DNA of 64,000 bases. It comes from Chlorokybus atmophyticus (taxonomy: Eukaryota > Plantae > Mesostigma and Chlorokybus algae). A program made the translations under genes and the position numbers. Every line of letters begins with the position of its first letter. Position 1 is the first letter of the stretch. Under the pieces are notes generated by a model. That model saw only the letters and a list, made by a program, of their open reading frames with translations. It made no database searches and had not been told where the DNA came from. Below, one piece after another: positions 1,272-64,000 of the stretch. The stretch covers positions 1,741,186 through 1,805,185 of the forward strand of contig RHPI01002533.1 in NCBI GenBank assembly GCA_009103225.1. The letters run 5' to 3'.

Positions 1272-2163
1272 GAGGGCGTGGGGGCCTGGGGGGGCGGCGA
1301 CAGCTTCGGCGGCGGCGGGGCGCAGAGTCGGCAGTCGGCACAACTCAATGCCGACGTCAGACCGGCGGCCTGACAGCGGCGGCAGCGGCGGCAACTAGCA
1401 GCCGCTACCCACTAGGGTGGGTAGTGATAGTTGTAAGCTAGTTGTTGTTGTTGTATAGTTGTATAGTTGTATAGCGCTGCTGTTGGCCTAGCCTAGCCTT
1501 GCCTTGCTTGCTTAGCCTAGCCTAGCTTGCCTGGCCTAGCCTAGCTTGTTAGTGTGAAGGGGAGGCGGCCACTCAGGCAGCCTCACCTCAAGTATTGCAT
1601 CCCAGCACATCACTTGTAACTTAATATCACATATTACTTGTGATTGTGCTCGTAGTTGGGGCTGCCACCACGTGGATTCGTGGTGGTGTAAGGGGGGGTT
1701 GTGGTTGTTTACACTTCTCCCACCCCAAGAAAGCAGTTTAACGCCAACTTGGGCTGTTTTGGCCGCCATTCAGTGCGGTAGGGCCGCCAGATTCAATCTA
1801 AGCGGTCGATATCAAACCCTCGACTCACAACTTGTTGATATTGGCCTGTAGGGCTAATTCAACGAGAGTTTGGCAACTTTTGTGTCATTTACAATCGTGA
1901 GTTGAGCAGGGTTGTACAAAGTGCAAACTTTGAGTTGTTGTAGCTTGTGAACCGTTGCGTGGATTCGCGTGTGGTTTGTTTACAGGCGAGTGTCTTGTTG
2001 AGAGGTGTTGGGCAGTCATGTTATGGGCTGTTTAACCCAAGTATAGCACCTTAAAATCAACGAAAAAGAAGCAACAAATTTTGACACTTTCAGAGTGCAC
2101 AACTCGTGTGCTTGTGCACTCGTGCACTTGCAGACTTCTTGACGGCTTGTCTCCTTGGGCAGG

Positions 2164-3593
2164 ATGTCTCACCAAGGAGAGGAAGGAGGGATGTATCCCG
2201 TACCTGAGGATTCGTCCTATGAGCCATCAAGTGATGAGGAAGTGAAGCACTTAAAAACGAGTGGTGGTTACAGTGTTATTGAGGAGGAAGAAGCCAAGTC
2301 CAAGAGTGGTGAAGCTTCTTCAAAGAAGTCCTCTCATGATGACCAACCTATGGACGCTCAGAGCATCATCGGGGTGGCCATAGCGAAGTACGCAACAGAG
2401 CTTGAAGCTCTTCTTGCTGCACACCCCCAGCTTCGCAAGGAAGTGTGGGATGAGTGGGCGCAGCAAGTCCGTAACGCATATGAGACGGACTTCGCGGCAC
2501 TCCCCCGCGCAAGCAAGGAGATGGTGATTCGCATGATCGAGCACGAGGTGACGCGTAATGTACCGCAACTCATGCACAGATTCGGCAGTGGCCACTCTTA
2601 TGGCTACTTATGACAAACCAGGCCCGTATTTAGGCCAGAGGTTGGCGTTCGAGGCTCTCGCCTTATTGACGGTGGAAACTCAGCAGCGTTGCAAGGACCT
2701 CTTCTGGTACTTAAGGCCTGAGCTGGAGGAGAAGTTAGCTCGAGAAGAGCGCTCGACTGCACGCCTCGATGCTATGCAGTCCGAGTTGGTGGCATTACGC
2801 TAGCAGGTGGCCGGGGCTACCACAACTGTAGCAGGGACATCAGTTGGCCTACCCGTCACAGCGCTGAACAAGCCCGAGAAGTTCAAACCCAATGGGGCTG
2901 TGAACATTCATGATTGGGTGGTGAATGTAAAGCGCTACTTGGCTGCACTTCAGCAACCAGTTAGTGAGCATACATCTGTTGCTGAGTTGCTCATGCCACC
3001 TGACGCTTTGGCCAAGTGGGCGCGTCAAACGGAGGATGGTGCTTCCAAGACTGTAGAGGCATTGTTTCATTTCTTGGTGGCATGGACCCGACTGCTGCTG
3101 CTCGCATCAAGCTTTACCGGTTTGCGCAGAATGGTCGGGCGGCTTCAGTGTACTTGCAGGAGTTTCAGGCACTTGTTGGCCGTGTTAACAGTGGGCTCAT
3201 GCCCATGGACAAGGCTGAGCAGTTTGACCTGTACAAGCGCGGCTTGGATGCGCGCTTGCGCGACCAGTTGTAGTACAACACGTCAACGGGGCAACCGTGG
3301 ATTCCCGCGGACCTCGCAACCTTGCAGAGGTTGAGTGTGTATCTGTTCAACGACATTGCTGCGGCTGTGCAGGACAAGTCACAGGTGGTGGCTTCAGTCA
3401 AGCCACATCGGGGAGGGGGGAAGCGGTTCCCTCCACAAAGTGCGCATGCGGCGAAAAAGGCCAAAACCGCATACGCACCTGCGAGTGATGCTACGCTTAT
3501 TGCAGCACGCGCCTGCTACGTGTGCCATCAGCCAGGTCACATTGCGAGAACTGCCCAACCCAGGGAAAGGGCAAGGCCAAGAAGGTTGAATAG
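2164..3593 (+). pseudogene. gag: gag pseudogene (capsid-like region plus CCHC zinc knuckle)
   Basis: ORF fragments 2155-2613, 2558-2803, 2807-3334, 3016-3273 and 3322-3606 align with family B Gag (KPEKF/RPAEF, LRQNGR..Y.Q.FQ, LF.RGLD). Zinc knuckle CYVCHQPGHIAR(N)C. Confidence 0.85.
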
Positions 3594-6500
3594 GATTACG
3601 TCGTGACTGATGTACCTTCATTTAGTGGCCAGTTGCTAGTGTTACATGCAGCAAACTGGTTTAATGAATTGTCTCGTGTACACGTAATGACACATGCATG
3701 GCAAGCACATGATGAGCTGCCACTTTTTGATAGTGGAAAAGCGGATGACCAGGCTTGTGTGCTAGTGCATGTAGAATTTAACATGCTACCAGAAGTTTTG
3801 CGCACATTGTGTGAGTTATAAAATAAACACACGATTCTGAGTGTGGTTGTCATTGTGCCGAAGTATCATGGACTGTGGCTAAAGCATACTCGGGGGGGGA
3901 CTGTGTTTAAACAATTCACAAAGCGTGAGACAGGGACATTGCGGTTTTCAGCAATATTGATTAACCCGCGCATCAGTCAAGGAATCTTGGCTACTTTCAA
4001 GGGCGAGTAGTATCTTTATTGTGGACCTTCATAGGCACGGCACAGAGTATTACTAGCTCGTTCTTGGTTGACACCGGGGCAACGCATAACTTCGTCGAAG
4101 AAAAATGGGTTATGCACAATAAGATAGCGTGTAACACCTCAGCATTCTCAGCTACTGGTGCTAGGGGTACGTTATCGGTAAAAGGTGAAATCAAGTTGAA
4201 AGTTAAGATTGGTAGTTATCAAGCAAAATTAACTTTCATCGTAGTACCCATTGACATAGTTGGTGTTGATGTGGTATTTGGCCAAGAATGGCAGAATGAA
4301 GTGTTTATGACATTGGATACTGCTGCACGACTGTGCACAGTAAAGAAGGGGCGTAAGCGCATCACTTTGTCCGTGCAGAGGTCGGATAGCTTGGAATACA
4401 AGCAAACAGACCCTGCGTTACTTACGGCGCTTTAAGTGAAGCGTGCGTTACATAAAAACACACCTGCTTTTCTAATGCACTTAACGTCGAATGATGATAT
4501 AGTGCCTGGCAATATAAAAGGTGTGGCGGACATCATTGAGAAATTTCAAGATGTGTTCTCAGATGAGTTGCCGGGCTTACCCCCTGATCGAGGTGTCGAA
4601 CACACAATACCTTTACTTCCTGATAGTGAGCCTCCAGTTCGGCCTATATACAAGTTGAGCCCTCGTGAGAGGGGGGAAATGGAAACAGAGATAGAAGAGT
4701 TATTGGAAAAGGGATTGATTGAACCAAGTTCTTCACCGTTTGGCGCACCCATATTGTTTGTTATGAAAAAGAATGGGAAGTTGCGCATGTGTGTGGATTA
4801 CCGTGCTCTGAATAAGATCACGGTAAAGATCAGATACCCGTTGCCAAGAATTGATGATGTGTTTGACAAGTTGTCAGGGAATGCGTACTTTAGTACGCTA
4901 GACTTGACAAGCTGCTAACATCAAATCCGGATTCATCCTTTTGATGTCTATAAGACAGCATTCCGGACACCTACGGGCCATTATCAATACAAAGTGTTAC
5001 CTTTTGGATTGACTAATGCACCCGCTGTGTTTCAGAAGGAAATGAGTAAAATGTTTTGTGACATGCTTGGTCAACATGTCAGGATATACTTGGATGACAT
5101 CATTGTATTTAGTAAAACAAAGGAAGAACATAGGCAACACTTGGAAGCGGTGTTTGCAAAATTGCACAAGCATCGTTTGTTGGCAAATCTCACCAAGTGT
5201 GATTTCTGTGGAACGGAGTTGCCCTTTCTTGGTCACATTGTGAGTGGTGCGGGTATCAAACCTGACCCTCGCAACGTGCAAATTGTGAAAGAGTGGCCCC
5301 AACCTCAGAATATCCATCAACTACGTCCTTTCTAGGGTTGGCAAACTATTTTCGCAAGTTCATGATGGGGTACTCGACAGTTGTCATGCCTTTGATTAAA
5401 CTGTTGCATAAAGATGCCCCGTTCACTTGGACAACATCACAAGAAGTTGCTATGCAGAAGGTGAAGTTGGCTTTAACATCGGCGCCGGTGTTAGCACTGC
5501 CCAATTGGGACAAACACTTCACAGTGGTCAGTGACGCATCAACACTTGGGTGTGGTGCGGTACTATTGCAAGATGGTAGACCTTGTGCTTATGAGAGTAG
5601 GAAGTTCATTCCTGCAGAGGTGAACTACACTACGACAGAGCAAGAACTATTGGGTATAATTCATACTCTCGAGACATGGAGATGTTACTTAGAGGGTGTT
5701 CAATTCACTGTTGTGACTGATCACAACCCGTTGGTGTAGTTCTCTACACAGCAAAACTTGTCGAGACGGCAAGCGCGCTGGAATGAGTTTTTGTCCAGGT
5801 TCACCTTTGATTGGGTGTATCGGCCGAACAGAACTGATGTGGCTGACCCTTTAAGTCGCTGCCCGTCATTACTGTCGGTGTTGCGCGCGCAGTTACTCGC
5901 GACACGCAGCACATTGTCTTCCAATGATTTGTGGAAACTGTTGTACAGGGGTACACTTTGGACTCGTGGTTTTCTAATGCAAACAACTTGCGAAAATTTA
6001 ACAAACGTGACAATCTGTATCACATGAGCAGCAGTTTGGCGATCCCGAATCATGCTGAACTGCGTGTAAAATGCATAGCGGATGTACATGATCCACCTTA
6101 CGCTGGACACTTTGGTACTCGCAAGACCACTAAGGCAGCGCAACAGTTGTATTGGTGGCCATCGTTGCCTGCTGATGTGAAGCGGTATGTGGACACGTGT
6201 GACAAATGTCAACGTGACAAACCGTTACGTCAAAAGCCCGCTGGGCTACTGCGGCCGTTACCAGTTCCTGACAGTAAGTGGGAAAGTGTGAGTATGGACC
6301 TTATCACTGAGCTCCCTGAGACAGCGTTGGGTCATACTGCGGTTGCAGTGTTTGTGGATCGTTTGACCAAAGTAGTTCACATTGTTCCTTGCCGTACGGA
6401 GCTAGGCTCCCGTGGTGTAGCAATGGTTTTTGTCGCGTCAGTGTTCAAGTTGCATGGCTTGCCTCACAATATTATCTCTGACCGTGACCCGAGGTTTGTG

Positions 6501-7200
6501 GCTTAGTTTTGAAAGTCGCTATGCAAACTCCTGCAGATACAACAGCACATGAGTATCGCTTATCATCCGCAGACTGATGGTCAGACTGAACGCACCAATT
6601 AAGTGATTGAGGAAACCATTCGGCATTATGTGAGTCCGAATCAGTCTGATGGGATATTTATCTTCCAATGGCTGAGTTCGCGATTAACAATGCAAGAGAG
6701 CGTGCAGGAAACTCCGTTCTTCTTAGATTACGGAGTGCATCCACAAAGTCCTGCGAGTATTAAGTTGCCAGCTAACGACTTGACTCGCGTGCCTGTAGCG
6801 CGCGAGATGGCTGCGGCCATGCAAGACAGGTTAGCATTTGCAAAGAGCTGTCTGCGCGCAGCGCAAGACCGACAGACATCTTAAGCTGATAAGCATCGTA
6901 GGCATGGGGCCCGACTATGACGTGGGCAATTCGGTGCTTTCAAGCACTAAAACCATATCTATCAAGGGAGTGGGTACCCGCAAATTTTCCCTCGCTGGAT
7001 AGGCCCTTTCAAAGTGGTTGATCGGGTCGGCACTCACACGTATCGTTTGGACTTACCACATTCCAAACGAATACATGATGTGTTTCATGTGAGTTTACTG
7101 AAACCGTACCGTTTAAATGGTCGGGTTCAACCTCCTCCACCCCCAGTCGCAGTGGATGGCGATGATACTTTTTAGTATGAGGAGGAAAAAATCCAGAAGC
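3594..7200 (+). pseudogene. pol: pol pseudogene (extra N-terminal domain, PR, RT, RH, IN, partial chromodomain)
   Basis: [70 protein letters not shown]; interrupted by stops and frameshifts. Confidence 0.92.
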
Positions 7201-13156: not shown

Positions 13157-13277
13157 NNNNNNNNNNNNNNNNNNNNNNNNNNNNNNNNNNNNNNNNNNNN
13201 NNNNNNNNNNNNNNNNNNNNNNNNNNNNNNNNNNNNNNNNNNNNNNNNNNNNNNNNNNNNNNNNNNNNNNNNNNNNN
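13157..13277. other. Assembly gap (N), flanked by poly-C
   Basis: N run. Confidence 1.
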
Positions 13278-14445: not shown

Positions 14446-14815
14446 TCGTGATTGAGACGATGCATGGCCAAATCGATCATTACATCTATAAACAAACACG
14501 GCTACTTTGACCACTACAAGTCTTGGCTGGCAACTCATAAGACATCACACTGGGTTGAGTTTGGGTAGAGAGAAGGCGTGGTCACTCCAAGTATTACTTT
14601 GAAGCTGTCGTGTTGAACGTCTTTCAATAATAAATGGTTATATGAGGTGCTTGTAGTCTAGTGGCACAAACTGTTTTATTTTATGTTTTATTTTATTCAA
14701 GCAGGGTTAACTGCTGTCTGCGCATAGTGCTGTTCATGCTGCGGCATTATGTGCACAGCAACATGCACTCACACGAACGGACAATGCATTGCAGGCAAGT
14801 GTCTAGGATACCGTA

Positions 14816-15750
14816 NNNNNNNNNNNNNNNNNNNNNNNNNNNNNNNNNNNNNNNNNNNNNNNNNNNNNNNNNNNNNNNNNNNNNNNNNNNNNNNNNNNNN
14901 NNNNNNNNNNNNNNNNNNNNNNNNNNNNNNNNNNNNNNNNNNNNNNNNNNNNNNNNNNNNNNNNNNNNNNNNNNNNNNNNNNNNNNNNNNNNNNNNNNNN
15001 NNNNNNNNNNNNNNNNNNNNNNNNNNNNNNNNNNNNNNNNNNNNNNNNNNNNNNNNNNNNNNNNNNNNNNNNNNNNNNNNNNNNNNNNNNNNNNNNNNNN
15101 NNNNNNNNNNNNNNNNNNNNNNNNNNNNNNNNNNNNNNNNNNNNNNNNNNNNNNNNNNNNNNNNNNNNNNNNNNNNNNNNNNNNNNNNNNNNNNNNNNNN
15201 NNNNNNNNNNNNNNNNNNNNNNNNNNNNNNNNNNNNNNNNNNNNNNNNNNNNNNNNNNNNNNNNNNNNNNNNNNNNNNNNNNNNNNNNNNNNNNNNNNNN
15301 NNNNNNNNNNNNNNNNNNNNNNNNNNNNNNNNNNNNNNNNNNNNNNNNNNNNNNNNNNNNNNNNNNNNNNNNNNNNNNNNNNNNNNNNNNNNNNNNNNNN
15401 NNNNNNNNNNNNNNNNNNNNNNNNNNNNNNNNNNNNNNNNNNNNNNNNNNNNNNNNNNNNNNNNNNNNNNNNNNNNNNNNNNNNNNNNNNNNNNNNNNNN
15501 NNNNNNNNNNNNNNNNNNNNNNNNNNNNNNNNNNNNNNNNNNNNNNNNNNNNNNNNNNNNNNNNNNNNNNNNNNNNNNNNNNNNNNNNNNNNNNNNNNNN
15601 NNNNNNNNNNNNNNNNNNNNNNNNNNNNNNNNNNNNNNNNNNNNNNNNNNNNNNNNNNNNNNNNNNNNNNNNNNNNNNNNNNNNNNNNNNNNNNNNNNNN
15701 NNNNNNNNNNNNNNNNNNNNNNNNNNNNNNNNNNNNNNNNNNNNNNNNNN
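14816..15750. other. Assembly gap (N)
   Basis: N run. Confidence 1.
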
Positions 15751-16112
15751 GGGGGGGATCCTCTATCATAGTAAATACGGTACGAGCCACTTCAAGTGGT
15801 CCACTAGCAGCAATTCATTCAGCTGCAGGACAGCTTGTGCTCATCATCTGCAAATAAGGCAGACAACTGTTTGCAACAAGACGAGCAACTAGTGTGATCA
15901 CGTGTGTTTATGTGCTATGGAGGGTCTTCAAAAGCGACTGTACAGGACAGCTAAGGTTTTACCAATCAAGTTGTACCTAACTGAAGTTTACACCTCATTT
16001 ATGGAGATGGGGTTGCTGCACGGTGCACCAATTGACAACTAGTAGCGACTGATACAAGTTTGTATGCTAAGGAATGCAGCAGCCAAATGCTGGCTCAGCT
16101 GTACTAACAAAT

Positions 16113-18330
16113 TTAATAATCATTGTCTGAAGACCTCACAAATTTGTTCCATCGCGCAAACATGGAATTGGGCTTGTCTGTTGTTGCGCAAGAACTCCGT
16201 TCGCCCTTACGAGCGCGCCAGCTGACAACAAGCGGAAGCGTTGCGACGAGTATGCCAACAATCCAACGTCCGTAAAAGGCAACCCAGAACGGCGCAAGCA
16301 CAAGATACTCCGTGCCTGCAACTTCAGGTGGTATTGCCGCCATTCCCGCTGCGGTGAACGCCGCAGCCGCGCACATCAAGGATAACTCAACGAAGAAGGC
16401 CACAGCCATGACCAACGCTTGTCGGCGAGCAAAAGCCACACTCCACGGGCTCATTTCGCGCTTGAGCACCACCGCGAACCATGCAATTGTGGTCAGCACC
16501 GGCGATGGAACTATCGACATGCGGGTTGCGCCTGTGGATATCGCGGCCCAGGCAAAGAAGAACGACAGCGCATTGCAGACTGTCCATACGCGCACGCTTG
16601 TGAGGCGTACAGAGAGGTAAAGAATGTTGGGGTCCGAGGATGAGTTGACTGGTGGGGCTTCTACCCACCCGAGGGGAGGCTGATTGAACCCCTGGTATGT
16701 GATGCTGAAGACGAGCGCAGCCACGACAAGCAGCGCGTTGATGGTGTTGTTGAACCGGTCCTTGTCTGCGAAGGGTATCCGCCGCCACCACCTGCGCGCG
16801 TCGCCGGTGAGGCAATGGTCAAGCGTCTTTCCGCAGTACGTGATGAGCGTCTCATCGCTGCCGTGTCCGAGAAGGAAGCGCACGCAGGCCTCGCTGCCGG
16901 ACTGCGCCGCGCGATGAAGAGGCGTGAACCCGCCGCAATCTACCACATCAAGGTTCTTGTACCGTCCCAGTTGGAAGAGCCCTTCGAGCAGGCTTTCATC
17001 CCCACGTGCAGCAGCGAGGTGTAAACAGGTTGCGCCCTCGTTGTTGCGTGCGTTTTGCGTGACGCCCGCCACGTGAAGCGCATGCAACATGTCAAGCTCG
17101 GCGTTGCCCACAACACATTGTGCTATGTGTCCGTGCTTCAGAAACAGATGTAATGGCGTGTTCCCATGCGATGTCGTGCGCGTTATGCCATCCGCATCAG
17201 TGCACACAAGAGCATGGATGATGCGCGTGTCAACGTCGTTGCCTACAACAGCATGGTGCAGAGGCGTGTAGCGCGTGTCGTGCGGCCTCGCGCCAAACTC
17301 GTCCTTGCGCGACACATCCTCCATGCTGATGTCGGGTGGCGAGCTGAACTGCATGCAGACATTGCGCAGCTTCGCATCTGCGCCGTGACGCAACAGACAA
17401 GAGACAGCTGGCACATTGCGCTCTATCACTGCCACATGCAGAGCGGTCTGCTGCTCGTACATGCCAAAACACACAGCGGCGTTGATGTCGGGCGTCATTG
17501 ATGAGCCGGCAGGCGCAGCTGCCATGCTCGGATCATGGTTGTTGACAAGCTTTGATGCTCCAATCGGCTCACCGCTGATGTCCCAGCCAACATCACGTAG
17601 CAAACAGCGACGCACATCGTGCCAGTCCCCACTCAAGGCTGCCTCAAGTGCTTTGTTGATGAGCTCATCATCAGCACCTGCCAGAAAAGGAACATGTTCG
17701 AGCATGTTGATATGTGTTGATTGACAACTGCGCACCTGTTGCTGTGCAGTGCTTGACAATGTGGTGCACAACGCCTGCCTTGTTGACTTCAGCAAGCCCA
17801 TCTTCAATGGCTATGCACATGTCGCCCCATCTACCCTCCGCCGCAGCACTCCGCAATCGCTCAGTGGCTGAGCACAATGCCATGTGTCACGTGTAACACT
17901 CACATATTCACAGGATTACCGTCACAAACAGCATAGCAAATGAGTTCATCAGGAAGCTTTGCATTCTTGACTGCAGTGTTTCAGCAGTTATGCACAGCTG
18001 CGAATGAATTCAGTTGTGCACGAACCAAGCGCATGTACCTGCGCGTTGGGCTGCGGCATCGTCCAATGTGTTTGCAAGCGCTCTGCATGAAAGACGTATA
18101 ACGAAACTCAGTGCTGATCTGAGTGCAATTAATCAGACAGCAACTATGTTGCGCTGGCAGTCTGACGTTTCAAACTCACTGTTGCTGCAAGAAGTGTGCG
18201 ATCTGCTGCAAGATGTCCTGCAGCTGTTGCTTGGTCCCATCTGGGAGGTGGACACCAAATCCATCACGATCCACGGTGAAGGTCAATGGTATACTAGCAT
18301 ACCCATGCTACTATCCTGCTGCTAGTATCA
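16113..18330 (-). CDS. Ankyrin-repeat + PGG-like transmembrane protein (ACD6/ITN1-type architecture), multi-exon; 5' end unresolved
   Basis: Main exon 16113-17677 is open: ANK motifs QTALHVAV, YTPLHHAV, GNTPLHLF, GATCLHLAA, GFTPLHRAA, then ALLVVAALVFSITYQGFNQPPLGW (PGG-like) and 4-5 hydrophobic helices. Intron 17678-17735 (GT..AG) and small upstream exons (~17736-17867, ~18040-18083, ~18179-18300) join in frame. Confidence 0.85.
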
Positions 18331-53898: not shown

Positions 53899-54426
53899 TG
53901 TAACAGCACCACCGTCGCCGGTGATGCCCCTTCAATCCTCTACCCCAACACCCACACCGCCTATGACAAGCCTTTCGACGGCGTGGCCGCCACTGAGCAA
54001 AGAACTGAAAGTCCCCCACATCAGATTGATGTGACCTTTTATATCAAGAGTATATCAACTATATAACTCTCGATAATTAACTCACAACTAGACATCGACC
54101 CTACAGATAGGGTAGGTTAGGAAATCCAGCGTGAGCCAATCACAGCTCAGATAAGGTACCTATCGATAAGGTACCTATCCAAAGATACCTATCGTAAGGT
54201 ACCTAACGAGATAGTGATCACATTATATCAAATGTGACACTAAATAGGCTTGAATAAGCGGTTCTACACCCATTGGGACTTATTTAAGCTATGATAAAGC
54301 ATCATAGCCTTTAATAAGCGAGGAACCGTAGAAAAGAGGTATAAATAAGCATATTTAAATACTTATTCATACAAAATGTGTTATTCAGGTAGCAATAATA
54401 CCCCTATTATTATTGCTCCCGTTACA
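53899..54426 (-). repeat. 3' LTR of chromovirus copy B1 (528 bp, TGTAAC...GTTACA)
   Basis: Near-identical to 60420-60945. Preceded on the minus strand by PPT AAGTGGGGGGGAA (54427-54439). Outer flank TATTA (53894-53898) is the predicted TSD. Confidence 0.97.
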
Positions 54427-54573
54427 TTCCCCCCCACTTAGGTTTTCAACGTCCTCGTTGAACTCAAGTTGATCAGGCTTGATTTCGAGTAATTGTAACC
54501 AGTGAGATAGCAGGAAATGACAGGGTGGTAATGAAACTGCACTGCCAGTCTGTCATAAAACCAAGCCCACAGT

Positions 54574-57500
54574 TTATGGGACAGGACATGAATCCCAATA
54601 AGCTCGAAGCAACTCGCGGCATTGCGTAAGATGCCTGTCGGGCTCCCAACTGTTATGTTTCGGGCCATACCCTTTCCATTTCACCAAATAGCAAGTTGCG
54701 CGTCCTCGACCATTTAGCTTATGGTGCAAAATAGCTTCCACCTCGTATTCGAGCTCGCTGTCCACCTCAACTGGCGGTGGTGGAGGCTGTGTTCTACCGT
54801 CTGAGCGGTAAGGTTTCAACAAGTTTACATGAAACACGTTGTGTATACGCACACTTGGGGGCAATTGCAGTCGATAAGCGTGCGTACCAACTCTATCAGT
54901 GATAGAGAAAGGACCTAACCATCGGGGCAGCAACTTGCGAGCACCCGTACCTTTGATGGTTATGTTTTTTGCATTAAGCAAAACTTTATCGCCGACATCG
55001 AAAGTGGCCATTTTTCGATGTGTATCAGCATAAGCTTTTTGCCTGTCCTGTGCTTCTGACAGACACAGCTTGGCTCGAGCCAAATTTTCTTGCATATTAG
55101 TGGCAAATTCCTTTGCCGCTGGTACAGTCACGGCATGGCGAGGTACACGCAATGACGCTGGTGTGTTTGGGCGAATCCCATAATTCAAAAAAAATGGGGT
55201 TTCCTTTACACTTTCCTGCCACGCGTTGTTCACAGCGAACTCTGCCATTGGCAAGTACCTGTCCCAATCAGCATGATTAGGAGCCACATAGTGGCGAAGC
55301 ATCTCTTCCAGTATTTGATTTGCTCGCTCAGTTTGACCGTCCGTTTGCGGGTGGAAAGCAGTCGACATGCTTTGTTTTACCCCCAACAATTCACAGACTT
55401 CTCGCCAAAACTTGGAGACAAAACGAGGATCACGATCTGTGACAAGTTCACGCGGTATACCGTGAACGCGAAAGACCGTGGACACAAATAAGTGTGCCAA
55501 GTCCCGTGCACTTACAGTTGTGCAACACGGGGCAAAATGCACCATTTTAGTCAAACGGTCGACAAAAACCACAATAGCAGTGTATTTAGCTGCTGTTTCA
55601 GGTAGGTCAGTAATCAAATCCATACTGACACTATCCCATTTTTGTTCTGGAATTGCCAATGATTTAAGCAATCCCGCTTGTTTTTATCGTAGTGGCTTAT
55701 TACGTTGACACACGTCACATGTGCGAACATATTGATCCACGTCAGCTGACATTGACGGCCACCAGTATAACTGTTGCGCAGATTTGAGTGTTTTGTGTTT
55801 CCCCAAATGCCCAGCATACGGCGGGTCATGCACTGAATGTAAGCATTGCTTACGCAAGTCGCCCGAGTTGGGAATTGCCAACTGCTCCCCTTTATACCAC
55901 AGATTGCTAACAGCAGTAAGCTGTTGCAAGTTGGTTTGACTGCTAAACCAAACATCTGAGTTATAACCTGCGGACACTTCCTTTAAGAAAGGATCTTCAG
56001 GCTGTTGTACATTACGCATACTTCGAGAGCGCGTAAGTGCCAAAAGAGCAGGGCTGCGACTTAGTGGATCCGCCACATTGGTGCGACCCGGACGGTATTA
56101 CCAAGTGAAAGTGAAACGAGAAATGAATTCATTCCACCTAGCTTGCCGCCTCGACAGATTTTGTTGCGTATGAAAGAATGTGAGCGGGTTGTGATCAGTA
56201 ATCACTGAAAACTCCACCCCTTCCAAGTAGCAACGCCATGTGCGCAGCGCGTGCACCACCCCGAGCAATTCCTGCTCAGTGGTTGTGTAATTACGTTCAG
56301 CAGGAATGAACTTTCTGCTTTCATATGCACATGGTCTGTCATCTTGTAGAAGGACTGCCCCACACCCAATGGTGGAAGCATCACTGATCACCACAAAAGG
56401 CTTGGTGTGGTCGGGGAAGGCTAACACAGGGGCTTGTGTTAATGCATCTTTAATGCGTGTAAAAGCAACCTCGTGTGCCTCCGTCCACACAAATTTAACA
56501 TCTTTTCTTAGTAAAGATGTTAAAGGGTTTGCCATGCCAGAATATGCTCGCATGAACTTGCGGAAATAATTGGCTAGCCCCAAGAAAGCACGTAACTGAT
56601 GTACATCCTTGGGTGGTGGCCAATCCTTTACCGCACACACCTTCTGAGGATCTGGTTTCAATCCTTCTTTGCCAATCACATGCCCTAAAAAGGGTAGTTC
56701 ATCCTTTGCAAAGTTGCATTTGGACAGGTTGGCATAGAATTTGTGTTCACGTAATCTAGCTAGAACCAATTTCACATGTTTGTGGTGGTCCTCCCGGGTT
56801 TTGCTGAACACAATAATGTCGTCTAGATATACCAGTACAAACTTGTACAATTCATCAGCAAATACCGCATTCATTGCTGTCTGAAATGTAGCCGGTGCAT
56901 TTGTTAACCCAAATGGTAACACTTTATACTCAAAGTGTCCTAGTGGGGTGCGAAATGCAGTTTTTTGTATATCCGACGGGTGGATTTTGATTTGATGATA
57001 ACCACTGGTCAAATCCAGCGTGCTGAACACTGTTGCACCTGACAGCTTATCAAACAAATCATCAATCCGAGGCAAAGGGTATCTGTTTTTCACAGTGACC
57101 TTGTTCAACGCACGGTAATCAATACACATGCGTAGCTTGCCATTCTTTTTGGGCACAAACAAAATTGGTGCACCAAAAGGAGATATGCTCTTTGTTATTA
57201 AACCTTTGTCCAATAACTCTTTGAGCTGTTTTTCCATCTCCGCGTGTTCTAAGGGACTTAGCCTGTATATAGGCCGCCAAGGTGGCTTTGCCCCCTCCTC
57301 TAACGGAATGGTATGATGTATGTTTCGATCGGGAGGCAACTCTGGGAGTTCATCCTGAAATACATCTGCGTATTGTTCCGTAAGTGACTGCACCACAGGG
57401 TCACTGATAGCCTGTTCAGCAGGTGTTTCCACCTGTCGTAAGTGCAGTAAGTATACGTCCTCACGTTTACGCATGCAACGTTTCAATTGCATAGCAGAGA

Positions 57501-58305
57501 GGAGCGGAACATTATCGCGTGGTATACGTGCGGGTACAGATGCTGTTAAAGTCATCCTACGTTTCCCTTTACGAAGGGTGCACGTATTGGCTCGAGAGTC
57601 TAATTGTAAACCTGCTTCAGTGTGCCACTGTTCCCCTAAAACAACATCCACCCCGGGGATACCAATATCCACCACGATGAAGGCTGGTCGGGTTATATGG
57701 CCATTAATAACAAAACGCCCTTTTACCTCTCCCATTGCATTGAGAGTGGAACCAGCAGCACGTACATATGACGTGACTGGTGTGAAAGGAATGTTATTAC
57801 GTTTCACCCAAGCATGTTCAACAAAGTTATGGTTTGCACCAGTATCAATCAATGCTGTACATGGTGTACCCATAAGTTGACTCTCAAATCTCCATTTGAG
57901 TGGCACTGAGTGACCATCAAATGTAGCTAATATCGGAGTGCCGTGATTGGTAGCAGACTTGATAAAGATCACTTGCAATGGTGAAGCTCCTGTATCTTTG
58001 CGTGAGAGTTGCATGATTACTTCTCCCCCTTTCAACAATCGCGACCACGGGCCATGATATCGAGGGATAACTACACATGCAGTGATAGCATGTTGTAATT
58101 GCAACTCGTGTAAGTGCTTAACAGCAGTTACTAATTCAGAGAATGGAACATTGATTAAAACACAACCGTTTGCATTTCTCAACACAGGTGGTGTGCTCAT
58201 ATCAGTCCATACATCTGATACATCGCAAAGAGAGGAAACTTTATCAAGAAGTACAGAGTTTTTAAAGTCGTTCTGCTCGACTAAGCTACCAACCACGGAC
58301 AATTC
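54574..58305 (-). pseudogene. pol: pol of copy B1 with two CAA>TAA nonsense changes (56098-56100, 55684-55686)
   Basis: ORFs 56098-58302, 55684-56076 and 54574-55671 share one frame; the stops align with Gln codons in copy B2. Motifs DTG, YLDD, DAS, HHCC, DDE, LPRWLGPF and chromodomain EYEVEAIL..YLVKWKGY..NSWEP. Confidence 0.95.
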
Positions 58306-59481
58306 CTATTTCTTTTCTCTCTGCTGCTTGGCCTTCTGTGCATTCTGTTTTGCATAGCACGTAGCCTCCCCATGACCTGTCTTCTTGCAGAAACTGCAAG
58401 TGATGATGGATTTGGCCGCATTGTAGGGGCCAGCAGGATGAGATGGTTTCGCCTTTTTCACAAAAGGTTTGTTGCCAGTGGCCGGGCGCTTTGCAGCTGA
58501 AACCGGGGCTGCCTCTTTTGCCGTGGTTTGCATGTTGGCGTGAGAGCGCTTTACACTGTCCACAGCAGCAACCATCTGCATCAGCATTGGTAAATCCGTC
58601 GAGGCCCACTCTTGCAAACTCGCGGGGTTGACGGCCACATGCTGCACGAGATCTGTGTCCAAGCCACGCCTGAACATATCCAGCTGATCAGCATCACTGA
58701 TAGGTAGTTTGCCAGCATTGATCTTGCTGACAAACGACTGAAAATCCTGGATATACTGCTGAACCGGACGCCCGTTCTGACGCAGGTTGTGCAGCTGGTT
58801 GCGAGCAACCTGGGCAGGATCTGCGCCACCATAGCGCTGCTCCATGAAAAAGCACAACTGATTTACTTCCCGCCCGAGGTTTGTATCCCGTTGCTTACGG
58901 CGGTACCACTCTGCCAGAGCATCGTTTGGGATCAGCAACTCAGCTACACGCAATTTCCCCTCCTCAGAAATGTGAAGGGAGTTGACATAGTGTCGCAACT
59001 TCACAAGCCAGTCGAAGATGGCCGCTTGCTTGTTGGGAACAAACTCGGCAGGACGAGCAAGTGCTTGAACAGGTGGACCACCGTCAGCACGCTGCAGACG
59101 CTCGATCATATTCAGAACACGTTTGCCTTCACCCATCTGCCCCTCCCAATCTCGCCCCATAAAGGTGGTGAGCTTTGAAACTTTTTCTGCCAATAGGAAG
59201 AGAAAGTTCACGAATGAGACAATTGCCTCACGAGGGTCCTGATCATAGGTGCTAAGGAAATGCTCCATCAAGTCCTGCTGTGTCATGCGAATAGAAAACT
59301 CAGGGAATATAGAAGGTAATCTATCATCCACTGAAGCTTCCGCAGCTTTGGCAGCTTGAGACTCATCAGGTGCATCATCCGGATTCGGAATATCTTCCAT
59401 GGATGGAAATTCCTCCTCACGGGAAGGTTGCTCTTTTTCCGAGCTCTCCCCTTTTGAGGTGGGCACCGAGTTTTCTTCCAT
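58306..59481 (-). CDS. gag: Gag of copy B1 (391 aa, CSFCKKTGHGEATC zinc knuckle)
   Basis: Intact ORF ending in TAG, in frame with pol. Confidence 0.93.
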   Translation of the reverse strand: MEENSVPTSKGESSEKEQPSREEEFPSMEDIPNPDDAPDESQAAKAAEASVDDRLPSIFPEFSIRMTQQDLMEHFLSTYDQDPREAIVSFVNFLFLLAEKVSKLTTFMGRDWEGQMGEGKRVLNMIERLQRADGGPPVQALARPAEFVPNKQAAIFDWLVKLRHYVNSLHISEEGKLRVAELLIPNDALAEWYRRKQRDTNLGREVNQLCFFMEQRYGGADPAQVARNQLHNLRQNGRPVQQYIQDFQSFVSKINAGKLPISDADQLDMFRRGLDTDLVQHVAVNPASLQEWASTDLPMLMQMVAAVDSVKRSHANMQTTAKEAAPVSAAKRPATGNKPFVKKAKPSHPAGPYNAAKSIITCSFCKKTGHGEATCYAKQNAQKAKQQREKK

Positions 59482-59682
59482 TTGTCTGCAAAACAGGCAG
59501 AATGGGATGGTGAGAACCTCACCAATGGACCAGGTTCAACGAGAGGATCAAAATGACCCCAAGTTGTAAAAGTCCCAAACAGAGTCCAAACCAGTCCCAA
59601 AATAGGAAAGGTTGGATCTGGAGTGTCACCAAACAGAACAAGTCTGAGTGGGACCAGAATGTCCTAACCCTGTGTTGTCCTC

Positions 59683-60127
59683 AACCAAGTCCCAATCTCC
59701 AGGCCGAAGCCAGAGGGGGAGGGTTTCAGACTAACAGGGTTTGGGAACAGATTGTCCTAGAACCTCCCCACAACTGTCCTAACCAAGTCCCGATCTCCAG
59801 GCCGAAGCCAGAGGGGGAGGGTTTGGGAACAGTTTGGTTTGGAACTTACGGACCCGGGTCAAACGACCCGGCAAAGCCGCTGGCAGGTCACAGGTACGTC
59901 ACAGGCATGCAACAGGCAAGCCACAGGCATGCAACAGGCAAGCCGTACGGTGACTAACTGTGACATGCACTGGCAAGCACAATGACAAGCAATCACCGCA
60001 TGCAATGACAGGCAATCACTGCAAGCAATGATAGTGCACTAAGTGTGACAAACAGTGATGGCACACTAGCAAGCCGCAATCACCGCATGCAATGACAGGC
60101 AATCACTGCAAGCAATGATAGTGCACT
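59683..60127. repeat. Direct repeats in the 5' leader of copy B1: 44-bp (59683-59726/59781-59824) and 52-bp (59989-60040/60076-60127)
   Basis: Direct sequence matches. Confidence 0.85.
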
Positions 60128-60419
60128 GGCAAGCCACTGTGTGATGTGCATGAAAGTACACACGTGCACTTGGCAAGCACCTGGCAAGCAGCTGACAAGC
60201 AGGCAAGCAGGCAAGTCACCGACGTGTGATGGTACCTCACACGTGGAGAGGCCGCCTCTTTGATAGGTGGCTTCAACGTGGAGGTAGCGCAGGGAAGCGA
60301 ACTTGAAGCTTGGGCTGCGTGGACGAATAGGAGGCCGCCGCCGACGCCTTCTGATTGGCCGAAAGCAGGTCGCCGCCCCCTATAAGTACCCACGTCACCC
60401 CCCAGCTCCTGGATACCAA

Positions 60420-60945
60420 TGTAACAGCACCACCGTCGCCGGTGATGCCCCTTCAATCCTCTACCCCAACACCCACACCGCCTATGACAAGCCTTTCAAC
60501 GGCGTGGCCGCCACTGAGCAGAGAACTGAAAGTCCCCACATCAGATTGATGTGACCTTTTATATCAAGAGTATATCAACTATATACCTCTCGATAATTAA
60601 CTCACAACTAGACATCGACCCTACAGATAGGGTAGTTAGGAAATCTAGCGTGAGCCAATCACAGCTCAGATAAGGTACCTATCGATAAGGTACCTATCCA
60701 AAGATACCTATCGTAAGGTACCTAACGAGATAGTGATCACATTATATCAAATGTGACACTAAATAGGCTTGAATAAGCGGTTCTACACCCATTGGGACTT
60801 ATTTAAGCTATGATAAAGCATCATAGCCTTTAATAAGCGAGGAACCGTAGAAAAGAGGTATAAATAAGCATATTTAAATACTTATTCATACAAAATGTGT
60901 TATTCAGGTAGCAATAATACCCCTATTATTATTGCTCCCGTTACA
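60420..60945 (-). repeat. Shared middle LTR (526 bp): 5' LTR of B1 and 3' LTR of B2
   Basis: PBS on one side (60405-60418) and PPT on the other (60946-60958). Confidence 0.97.
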
Positions 60946-61092
60946 TTCCCCCCCACTTAGGTTTTCAACGTCCTCGTTGAACTCAAGTTGATCAGGCTTG
61001 ATTTCGAGTAATTGTAACCAGTGAGATAGCAGGAAATGACAGGGTGGTAATGAAACTGCACTGCCAGTCTGTCATAAAACCAAGCCCACAGT

Positions 61093-63993
61093 TTATGGGA
61101 CAGGACATGAATCCCAATAAGCTCGAAGCAACTCGCGGCAGTGCGTAAGATGCCTGTCGGGCTCCCAACTGTTATGTTCCGGGCCATACCCTTTCCATTT
61201 CACCAAATAGCGAGTTGCGCGTCCTCGACCATTTAGCTTATGGTTCAATATAGCTTCCACCTCGTATTCGAGCTCGCTGTCCACCTCAACTGGCGGTGGT
61301 GGAGGCTGTGTTCTACCGTCTGAGCGGTAAGGTTTCAACAAGTTTACATGAAACACGTTGTGTATACGCACACTTGGGGGCAATTGCAGTCGATAAGCGT
61401 GCGTACCAACTCTATCAGTGATAGAGAAAGGACCTAACCATCGGGGCAGCAACTTGCGAGCACCCGTACCTTTGATGGTTATGTTTTTTGCATTAAGCAA
61501 AACTTTATCGCCGACATCGAAAGTGGCCATTTTTCGATGTGTATCAGCATAAGCTTTTTGCCTGTCCTGTGCTTCTGACAGACACAGCTTGGCTCGAGCC
61601 AAATTTTCTTGCATATCAGTGGCAAATTCCTTTGCCGCTGGTACAGTCAGGGCATTGCGAGGTACACGCAATGACGCTGGTGTGTTCGGGCGAATCCCAT
61701 AATTCAAGAAAAATGGGGTTTCCTTTACACTTTCCTGCCACGCGTTGTTCACAGCGAACTCTGCCATTGGCAAGTACCTGTCCCAATCAGCATGATTAGG
61801 AGCCACATAGTGGCGAAGCATTTCTTCCAGTATTTGATTTGCTCGCTCAGTTTGACCGTCCGTTTGCGGGTGGAAAGCAGTCGACATGCTTTGTTTTACC
61901 CCCAACAATTCACAGACTTCTCGCCAAAACTTGGAGACAAAACGAGGATCACGATCTGTGACAAGTTCACGCGGTATACCGTGAACGCGAAAGACCGTGG
62001 ACACAAATAAGTGTGCCAAGTCCCGTGCACTTACAGTTGTGCAACACGGGGCAAAATGCACCATTTTAGTCAAACGGTCGACAAAAACCACAATAGCAGT
62101 GTATTTAGCTGCTGTTTCAGGTAGGTCAGTAATCAAATCCATACTGACACTATCCCACTTTTGTTCTGGAATTGCCAATGGTTTAAGCAATCCCGCTTGT
62201 TTTTGTCGTAGTGGCTTATTACGTTGACACACGTCACATGTGCGAACATATTGATCCACGTCAGCTGACATTGACGGCCACCAGTATAACTGTTGCGCAG
62301 ATTTGAGTGTTTTGTGTTTCCCCAAATGCCCAGCATACGGCGGGTCATGCACTGAATGTAAGCATTGCTTACGTAAGTCGCCCGAGTTGGGAATTGCCAA
62401 CTGCTCCCCTTTATACCACAGATTGCTAACAGCAGTAAGCTGTTGCAAGTTGGTTTGACTGCTAAACCAAACATCTGAGTTATAACCTGCGGACACTTCC
62501 TTTAAGAAAGGATCTTCAGGCTGTTGTACATTACGCGTACTTCGAGAGCGCGTAAGTGCCAAAAGAGCAGGGCTGCGACTTAGTGGATCCGCCACATTGG
62601 TGCGACCCGGACGGTATTGCCAAGTGAAAGTGAAACGAGAAATGAATTCATTCCACCTAGCTTGCCGCCTCGACAGATTTTGTTGCGTATGAAAGAATGT
62701 GAGCGGGTTGTGATCAGTAATCACTGAAAACTCCACCCCTTCCAAGTAGCAACGCCATGTGCGCAGCGCGTGCACCACCCCGAGCAATTCCTGCTCAGTG
62801 GTTGTGTAATTACGTTCAGCAGGAATGAACTTTCTGCTTTCATATGCACATGGTCTGTCATCTTGTAGAAGGACTGCCCCACACCCAATGGTGGAAGCAT
62901 CACTGATCACCACAAAAGGCTTGGTGTGGTCGGGGAAGGCTAACACAGGGGCTTGTGTTAATGCATCTTTAATGCGTGTAAAAGCAACCTCGTGTGCCTC
63001 CGTCCACACAAATTTAACATCTTTTCTTAGTAAAGATGTTAAAGGGTTTGCCATGCCAGAATATGCTCGCATGAACTTGCGGAAATAATTGGCTAGCCCC
63101 AAGAAAGCACGTAACTGATGTACATCCTTGGGTGGTGGCCAATCCTTTACCGCACACACCTTTTGAGGATCTGGTTTCAATCCTTCTTTGCCAATCACAT
63201 GCCCTAAAAAGGGTAGTTCATCCTTTGCAAAGTTGCATTTGGACAGGTTGGCATAGAATTTGTGTTCGCGTAATCTAGCTAGAACCAATTCCACATGTTT
63301 GTGGTGGTCCTCCCGGGTTTTGCTGAACACAATAATGTCGTCTAGATATACCAGTACAAACTTGTACAATTCATCAGCAAATACCGCGTTCATTGCTGTC
63401 TGAAATGTAGCCGGTGCATTTGTTAACCCAAATGGTAACACTTTATACTCAAAGTGTCCTAGTGGGGTGCGAAATGCAGTTTTTTGTATATCCGACGGGT
63501 GGATTTTGATTTGATGATAACCACTGGTCAAATCCAGCGTGCTGAACACTGTTGCACCTGACAGCTTATCAAACAAATCATCAATCCGAGGCAAAGGGTA
63601 TCTGTTTTTCACAGTGACCTTGTTCAACGCACGGTAATCAATACACATGCGTAGCTTGCCATTCTTTTTGGGCACAAACAAAATTGGTGCACCAAAAGGA
63701 GATATGCTCTTTGTTATTAAACCTTTGTCCAATAACTCTTTGAGCTGTTTTTCCATCTCCGCGTGTTCTAAGGGACTTAGCCTGTATATAGGCCGCCAAG
63801 GTGGCTTTGCCCCCTCCTCTAACGGAATGGTATGATGTATGTTTCGATCGGGAGGCAACTCTGGGAGTTCATCCTGAAATACATCTGCGTATTGTTCCGT
63901 AAGTGACTGCACCACAGGGTCACTGATAGCCTGTTCAGCAGGTGTTTCCACCTGTCGTAAGTGCAGTAAGTATACGTCCTCACGTTTACGCAT
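61093..63993 (-). CDS. pol: pol of chromovirus copy B2 (RT-RH-IN-chromodomain); open frame truncated by the window end
   Basis: 966-aa open frame, ~99% identical to B1 and without the two stops. Confidence 0.96.
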   Translation of the reverse strand: MRKREDVYLLHLRQVETPAEQAISDPVVQSLTEQYADVFQDELPELPPDRNIHHTIPLEEGAKPPWRPIYRLSPLEHAEMEKQLKELLDKGLITKSISPFGAPILFVPKKNGKLRMCIDYRALNKVTVKNRYPLPRIDDLFDKLSGATVFSTLDLTSGYHQIKIHPSDIQKTAFRTPLGHFEYKVLPFGLTNAPATFQTAMNAVFADELYKFVLVYLDDIIVFSKTREDHHKHVELVLARLREHKFYANLSKCNFAKDELPFLGHVIGKEGLKPDPQKVCAVKDWPPPKDVHQLRAFLGLANYFRKFMRAYSGMANPLTSLLRKDVKFVWTEAHEVAFTRIKDALTQAPVLAFPDHTKPFVVISDASTIGCGAVLLQDDRPCAYESRKFIPAERNYTTTEQELLGVVHALRTWRCYLEGVEFSVITDHNPLTFFHTQQNLSRRQARWNEFISRFTFTWQYRPGRTNVADPLSRSPALLALTRSRSTRNVQQPEDPFLKEVSAGYNSDVWFSSQTNLQQLTAVSNLWYKGEQLAIPNSGDLRKQCLHSVHDPPYAGHLGKHKTLKSAQQLYWWPSMSADVDQYVRTCDVCQRNKPLRQKQAGLLKPLAIPEQKWDSVSMDLITDLPETAAKYTAIVVFVDRLTKMVHFAPCCTTVSARDLAHLFVSTVFRVHGIPRELVTDRDPRFVSKFWREVCELLGVKQSMSTAFHPQTDGQTERANQILEEMLRHYVAPNHADWDRYLPMAEFAVNNAWQESVKETPFFLNYGIRPNTPASLRVPRNALTVPAAKEFATDMQENLARAKLCLSEAQDRQKAYADTHRKMATFDVGDKVLLNAKNITIKGTGARKLLPRWLGPFSITDRVGTHAYRLQLPPSVRIHNVFHVNLLKPYRSDGRTQPPPPPVEVDSELEYEVEAILNHKLNGRGRATRYLVKWKGYGPEHNSWEPDRHLTHCRELLRAYWDSCPVP

Positions 63994-64000
63994 GCAACGT

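Follow-up and report, generated by a model that had tools for sequence, protein, structure and literature searches.

A conserved in-frame UAG between gag and pol of green-algal chromoviruses as a probable site of programmed readthrough

In a 64,000-nucleotide stretch of DNA from Chlorokybus atmophyticus (assembly GCA_009103225.1, contig RHPI01002533.1, positions 1,741,186 to 1,805,185 of the forward strand; hereafter the window, to whose numbering all coordinates refer), two retrotransposon families, A and B, each carry an amber codon at the gag/pol boundary, in frame with pol. Family B is read from the minus strand. The gag open reading frame (ORF) of its copy 1 (58309–59481) begins with the ATG at 59481, encodes 391 amino acids and matches Retrotrans_gag (PF03732). 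Its CCHC zinc knuckle, CSFCKKTGHGEATC (58398–58357), ends 16 residues before the TAG at 58308–58306, which terminates gag and is the proposed site of readthrough. The pol region of copy 1 (54577–58305) continues in the gag frame up to a terminal TAA at 54576–54574 and is interrupted by two earlier TAA codons; its first methionine is codon 36, leaving 35 codons after the stop without an ATG. The junction reads GAA AAG AAA TAG GAA TTG TCC GTG, the local context from AAG to GTG occupying 58294–58314, with A at positions −1, −2 and −3, G at +4, and A at +5 and +6. Such a layout, with one in-frame stop separating gag from a pol that has no start of its own nearby, is that of programmed readthrough, and the initial annotation of this DNA, which had described the in-frame arrangement and the 35 codons lacking ATG, is confirmed on both counts.

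Copy 1 of family B is bounded by a 5' long terminal repeat (LTR) with TG...CA ends (60420–60945, minus strand), which is at the same time the 3' LTR of a second copy, and by its own 528-bp 3' LTR (53899–54426, minus strand); the two repeats are 98.9% identical. One base past the 5' LTR lies a putative primer-binding site, TGGTATCCAGGAGC, which begins with TGG (60405–60418, minus strand), and a purine tract, AAGTGGGGGGGAA, stands just before the 3' LTR. Pfam matches follow one another in the order PF03732, PF13650/PF08284, PF00078, PF17917/PF17919, PF17921, PF00665, PF24626 and PF00385, those after gag representing protease, reverse transcriptase (RT), RNase H, the integrase zinc domain and core, an SH3-like domain and a C-terminal chromodomain. 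By its LTRs, primer-binding site, purine tract and domain order, family B is a Ty3/gypsy element, and it is assigned to the chromoviruses because the C-terminal chromodomain follows the series gag(CCHC)–protease–RT–RNase H–integrase. The leader from the primer-binding site to the gag ATG is about 935 nt long. It contains short tandem repeats with periods of 11, 22 and 23 nt (window 59900–60201 and 59690–59850, minus strand) and a duplicated segment of about 75 nt (CTGTTCCCAAACCCT...GGACTTGGTT).

Copy 2 lies upstream of copy 1 on the same strand, the two being joined through the common LTR at 60945–60420 in an internal–LTR–internal–LTR array (window 53899–64000), the product expected of unequal LTR recombination rather than of two separate insertions. 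What the window holds of copy 2 is 968 codons of pol without a stop (61096–63999, minus strand), continuing past the window end; its gag and junction lie beyond that end, and a single family B junction is visible in the window. The two copies are 99.2% identical. Their 21 coding differences comprise nine synonymous and 12 non-synonymous changes, the latter including two CAA-to-TAA changes in copy 1: a TAA at 56098–56100 (minus strand), at the end of the RNase H domain, where copy 2 has CAA at 62619–62617, and a TAA at 55684–55686 (minus strand), at the end of the integrase zinc-binding domain, where copy 2 has CAA at 62205–62203. Thirteen of the transition differences, several lying at CpG, have T or A in copy 1, a bias that suggests deamination-type decay of this copy, and the overall pattern of differences fits neutral decay after duplication. 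Copy 1, the copy that bears the TAG, is a defective, dead element, no longer able to make integrase because of the two later CAA-to-TAA changes.

Family A is represented by an element on the plus strand (2155–7200), in which gag remnants are followed by remnants of protease, RT, RNase H and integrase, with several frameshifts and stops (for example a TAA at 3819); no LTR pair was detected for it in the window. Its gag/pol boundary carries a TAG at 3591–3593 (plus strand) in the context GTT GAA TAG GAT TAC GTC GTG. A tblastn match (3753–4004, same frame) shows the frame past this TAG to be homologous with the pol N-terminus of family B. The frame before it carries ...NCPTQGKGKAKKVE; CYVCHQPGHIAR, the remaining part of the knuckle, is displaced from that frame by one base, indicating a 1-nt deletion within the CCHC knuckle, at about 3547–3551 (plus strand). 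The two families are 28–36% identical in gag and 52–70% identical in pol, and the TAG lies 16 residues past the knuckle in family B and 12 in family A. The initial annotation had seen the same arrangement, with the TAG in the same place, in family A. As far as the TAG being in frame with pol at an equivalent boundary is concerned, this holds; the upstream gag frame, however, is broken by the 1-nt deletion, and the alignment is too poor to establish homology at the level of columns. The "same position" in the two families is thus the same boundary, not the same column.

Relatives of the junction were reached through pol because family B gag yielded none, either by word search or in locus scans of metagenome and viral contigs. 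The pol of family B gave thousands of matches, the best at about 55% identity, in metagenome contigs and in the nearest named hosts, Closterium, Haematococcus and Astrephomene. In all, 86 related loci were compared: three found by protein look-up (L001–L003), 80 retrieved with an RT alignment as query (L004–L083) and three from named algae, Haematococcus lacustris (L084), Astrephomene gubernaculifera (L085) and Closterium (L086). The class of each junction was assigned by a script that started at the RT match, moved upstream in the pol frame and scored which frame contains the gag-like ORF. In 12 of the 86 loci (L004, L005, L007, L011, L012, L013, L018, L035, L045, L078, L084 and L085) a long upstream ORF is separated from pol by a single in-frame stop, and in every one of them the stop is TAG; together with families A and B this makes 14 elements, 14 of which have TAG as the in-frame stop. 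The upstream ORFs are gag-like, as judged in 11 of the 12 loci by a CCHC knuckle, a weak Pfam match or mutual BLAST links; for L012 the sole sign is that BLAST links its ORF to the C-terminal tail of gag in L011. After the TAG, pol continues in frame 0 without a spacer in 14/14 elements. These elements share only about 30–70% protein identity, and several have unbroken gag and pol ORFs of 1200–1540 codons. The H. lacustris junction reads AAA-TAG-GGT-GTT-GCC-C. In A. gubernaculifera the sequence is AAG-TAG-ATG (L085:3998–4003), the ATG being where the public annotation places the start of pol; for this element alone, termination–reinitiation is a possible alternative.

A second class of relatives has pol in the −1 frame. 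It comprises 33 metagenome loci, L003 and the Closterium locus, with gag/pol overlaps of 13–250 nt; many of the overlaps contain classical slippery heptamers (UUUAAAC, GGGAAAC, GGGAAAA or CCCAAAA) followed by hairpins, cases of this kind including L001, L017, L020, L023, L024, L027, L037, L053, L065, L068 and L077. A subset (L001, L036, L048 and L071) shows U-UUU-UAR instead, and there the likely shift site coincides with the gag stop. The spacing from zinc knuckle to gag stop in the −1 relatives matches that in the TAG elements. One locus, L074 (metagenome contig Ga0209208_10001964), was alone in being scored with an in-frame TAA before pol (182 codons upstream), and no zinc knuckle was found. 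The element may have decayed, or it may break the rule of TAG only. The remaining loci were too short or too broken to be classified.

The identity of the stop distinguishes the two classes. In the −1 class, gag ends with TAA in 20 cases, TAG in 12 and TGA in two, against 12/12 TAG for the in-frame class at the time of the test (Fisher p = 8.6e-5, calculated before L084 and L085 brought the count to 14/14). The flanking bases are also shared: over the 14 elements, position −2 is A in 12, position +4 is G in 12 and A in two, positions +5 and +6 are mostly purines, and positions +9 to +12 tend to U-G-C-C. Stop and context are thus kept among diverged relatives beyond what coding constraint would impose. 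Upstream of the TAG the 22 nt are purine-rich in the window families, with a pyrimidine fraction of 0.18 in family B and 0.23 in family A, and a range of 0.18–0.55 overall. UAG followed by G is the "Type III" readthrough context, which includes MuLV (murine leukaemia virus) and the luteoviruses (AAA-UAG-GUA) (PMC3159437), and it is the context of both window families, UAG-GAA in family B and UAG-GAU in family A. The Type I, tobamovirus-like signal UAG-CAR-YYA was considered and rejected, the bases after the stop being GAAUUG in family B and GAUUAC in family A. The initial annotation was correct in finding the 3' context unlike CARYYA; the context fits Type III (PMC3159437).

A tree of the RT–RNase H region was built with IQ-TREE in quick mode from 52 rows, family A being entered with an X wherever it is broken. 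All 14 TAG elements, families A and B among them, fall in one 20-row clade (SH-aLRT 99), which also contains two unclassified rows and the −1 elements L001, L002, L003 and L036. Family A groups with family B as its sister (99), and in a first run L005 joined the pair at 96. In the sister clade of the 20-row clade pol is in the −1 frame, and the 32 rows outside the 20-row clade comprise −1 and unclassified rows and a single row scored +1 by the frame rule. Two changes of state between TAG and frameshift account for the whole tree. Branches within the TAG clade are long, at 0.3–1.4 changes per site, so that recent shared ancestry does not by itself account for the retention of TAG in place of TAA or TGA.

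The stability of the RNA after the stop was assessed by comparing the fold of the 45 nt past the TAG with windows taken every 30 nt through the pol of the same element. Among the 12 relatives, ten fall within the most stable 10% of their own controls, nine of them at or below 6% (control fractions of 0.00, 0.04, 0.06, 0.01, 0.10, 0.01, 0.00 and 0.06 for eight metagenome elements, 0.00 for Haematococcus and 0.04 for Astrephomene), and the combined result over the 12 elements of this control-window comparison is significant (Fisher-combined p = 2e-5). L005 and L018 showed no excess stability after the TAG relative to their own pol windows. In the relatives, the predicted stems begin 2–8 nt past the stop, and several start with GCCCG. 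A stem starting with GCCC(G/A) shortly past the recoding site occurs in the TAG class (L004, L011, L012, L013 and L084) and likewise in the −1 class (L019, L021, L022, L024, L033, L043, L047, L048 and L071). There are hints here that the stimulatory hairpin may be homologous between readthrough and frameshift elements.

We consider it likely that the family B TAG is a site of programmed UAG readthrough of the MuLV/luteovirus "UAG-G" type. Readthrough is favoured because UAG is the only stop chosen, its flanks are conserved, pol follows in frame with zero spacer, and most members have a hairpin at recoding distance. The TAG at 58308–58306 would then be the true, inherited gag terminator of a Chlorokybus Ty3/gypsy chromovirus, acting as a leaky stop. 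Most ribosomes would terminate at the UAG and release Gag, while a small fraction would decode it with a near-cognate tRNA and continue in frame to give Gag-Pol, so that the Gag:Pol ratio would be set by the leakiness of the stop, as in MuLV. Families A and B, which are hairpin-less, would depend on the short context (AAA-UAG-GAA and GAA-UAG-GAU, respectively) or on an undetected signal. For the TAG elements, the occurrence of readthrough, its efficiency and the amino acid inserted are inferred.

Several observations weigh against this reading. Structure after the stop, placed about 8 nt downstream in Type III signals and seen in 10/12 relatives, is missing from the window families: their 45-nt windows show no excess stability, lying at the 62nd (B) and 71st (A) percentile, and shuffling of the 80 and 120 nt past each window TAG gave z-scores of +0.10, −0.14, +0.42 and −1.77, none significant. 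A fold of the sequence 3' of the TAG, as proposed with the initial annotation, thus gives no stem-loop signal in families A and B, pseudoknots not having been searched. No distal pairing partner stands out within 330 nt in either family; Rfam gave no match at gathering thresholds in the whole window, and at relaxed thresholds only chance-level matches at the two junctions. In generic eukaryotic contexts, G is not the base that most favours readthrough at +4. The sole visible family B junction sits in a copy with two C-to-T nonsense changes, the gag of family A reaches the TAG/pol frame only if the 1-nt knuckle deletion is allowed, and the low-complexity gag end and pol start cannot be aligned column for column between the families, either as DNA or as protein.

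Three other explanations of the TAG, namely nonsense mutation, a variant genetic code and independent expression of pol, are each less likely than readthrough. The idea that dead copies acquired the TAG through ordinary nonsense mutation (CAG to TAG), their ancestors having had a continuous gag-pol ORF, draws on the two other C-to-T nonsense changes that separate copy 1 from copy 2, on the excess of T/A states in copy 1 at transition differences, several at CpG, and on the heavy decay of family A; the copy 2 junction, moreover, is outside the window. We nevertheless regard it as improbable. The same single TAG stands at the boundary in 14 elements that share only about 30–70% protein identity, several of them with otherwise unbroken gag and pol ORFs, the −1 relatives have their gag stops equally far past the zinc knuckle, and independent hits at one site, all giving TAG, are very unlikely. 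The argument of the initial annotation that a TAG shared by two families speaks against random nonsense mutation is strengthened by these comparisons, which now extend to 14 elements of one clade, TAG only and mostly +4 G, with a hairpin in most relatives. A ciliate- or Dasycladales-type code, in which TAG, or TAA and TAG, would be a sense codon of the host and gag-pol a single ORF, was first suggested by the frame 59535–54553 of copy 1, whose 1661 codons include no TGA, a single TAG and three TAA (pol terminates at the third of these). It can be set aside almost entirely. The host is Chlorokybus atmophyticus, which uses the standard genetic code, and copy 2 has CAA at both TAA sites of copy 1. 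Family B gag and copy 2 pol together contain 70 CAA/CAG codons and no TAA, TAG or TGA, so that stops at sense positions of intact genes, the mark of reassignment, number 0 against 70. A stop in family A replaces a conserved Tyr in RT. The TAG relatives have exactly one TAG in about 1800 codons, two of them ending pol with TAG, and Haematococcus and Astrephomene have the same layout. A code in which TAA and TAG specify Gln is rejected on the CAA codons of copy 2, the codon counts and the Chlorokybus host, and is refuted as far as sequence can tell. ARAGORN found no tRNA in the window, and hence no suppressor tRNA there.

The third explanation keeps the TAG as a plain gag terminator and has pol made by another route, whether termination–reinitiation, internal initiation, a spliced mRNA or "stop-hopping". 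We judge it unlikely, though less so than a nonsense origin. In Astrephomene the TAG is directly followed by ATG, which would suit termination–reinitiation. UAG/G resembles the 3' splice-site consensus. Plant Ogre elements splice between gag-pro and the rest of pol, according to a survey of plant LTR elements (PMC6317226). Against such routes, family B has no ATG for 35 codons past the stop, and the frame-0, spacer-less pol of 14/14 elements is not something that independent initiation requires. The 22 nt upstream of the TAG are purine-rich and offer no polypyrimidine tract for a splice acceptor, and it is because of this purine-rich sequence that the splice-acceptor reading of TAG/G was rejected. 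The exclusive use of TAG and the hairpin 2–8 nt downstream in most relatives are hallmarks of recoding. Programmed readthrough, proposed as probable by the initial annotation, thus gains support from the comparative evidence, while readthrough itself remains an inference.

Elsewhere in the window, an intron-less ORF on the minus strand (16113–17810) encodes 565 amino acids with ankyrin repeats and a weak match to the PGG domain, and is 100% identical over 92% of its length to the Chlorokybus atmophyticus protein Chrsp1S08785, a match by which the host is recognised. Two runs of N, at 13157–13277 (121 bases) and 14816–15750 (935 bases), are assembly gaps, and the long "ORFs" across 14661–15857 are artefacts of the second.

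Readthrough of an in-frame stop is established for MuLV and accepted for Tca2 of Candida, Skipper of Dictyostelium and the elements Tj1, Tcry1 and Tosmo1-3 (bioRxiv 10.1101/2022.12.06.519325; PMC5009743). Like MuLV, a gammaretrovirus, the algal elements have gag and pol in one frame with UAG and then G between them, and in most of the relatives a structure begins a few nucleotides past the stop, the MuLV spacer being 8 nt (PMC3159437). They differ in that MuLV has a compact pseudoknot whereas simple hairpins with spacers of 2–8 nt are predicted in the algal relatives (pseudoknots were not searched), in that families A and B of the window lack significant structure, and in being chromodomain-bearing Ty3/gypsy retrotransposons rather than retroviruses. 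Tj1, Tcry1 and Tosmo1-3 of fission yeasts are likewise chromoviruses with an in-frame gag/pol stop in a strictly conserved short context, with A favoured just upstream of the stop (GAA-stop), and in Tj1 the stop is required for transposition (bioRxiv 10.1101/2022.12.06.519325). Their GAA-TGA-CT contrasts with the algal TAG followed by G-R-R, and their hosts are fungi rather than green algae. The initial annotation had treated readthrough as the strategy of MuLV; it is not confined to that virus, given the in-frame TGA of the fission-yeast chromoviruses (bioRxiv 10.1101/2022.12.06.519325). With the coat-protein readthrough of luteoviruses and poleroviruses (AAA-UAG-GUA), family B shares the −1 codon, the stop and the G at +4 (PMC3159437). 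Distal elements are implicated there (PMC3159437), in contrast to the absence of a partner within 330 nt here, and the gene context is unrelated. The same chromovirus group includes the −1 relatives (for example L001, L017, L024 and the Closterium locus), with the same domain order and distance from knuckle to gag stop and a hairpin past the recoding site, often with GCCCG; they are set apart by pol in the −1 frame, the 13–250-nt overlap, the slippery heptamers and gag stops that may be TAA, TAG or TGA.

The mechanism itself is already known; its use by green-algal chromoviruses seems to be undescribed. In the parts consulted, the survey of plant LTR elements describes some groups with two ORFs and a chromovirus clade, Chlamyvir, specific to algae (REXdb; Neumann et al. 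2019; PMC6317226), and those parts do not mention an amber junction (PMC6317226). Literature searches for algal chromoviruses or Chlorokybus with readthrough returned nothing relevant; their journal coverage was incomplete, so that this absence is weak evidence.

Leaky stops that set Gag:Pol are textbook knowledge for gammaretroviruses, and few have been documented in LTR retrotransposons, with none for the green lineage in the literature searched. For annotation, a lone TAG at the gag/pol boundary in the algal chromovirus clade should not be taken as a sign of decay. The compact, conserved UAG-G context, with or without a hairpin, offers a readthrough signal that can be tested in algae and plants. 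The clade-wide pattern, with sister groups that use frameshifting and readthrough, is the more interesting by-product of the analysis. As a tentative scenario, to which we give distinctly less credence than to readthrough at the family B junction, green-algal chromoviruses of a deep clade, with hosts in Chlorophyceae and in the early streptophyte Chlorokybus, may have exchanged −1 frameshifting for UAG-G readthrough and retained the same downstream hairpin; the lineage of families A and B would then have lost the hairpin, coming to rely on a minimal A-rich/UAG-GA context or an unknown host factor. The −1 frameshifting sisters, with their similarly placed hairpin, provide a natural comparison for the exchange of recoding strategies, and if the scenario is true, these elements would form a natural series on the interconversion of recoding modes and their signals.

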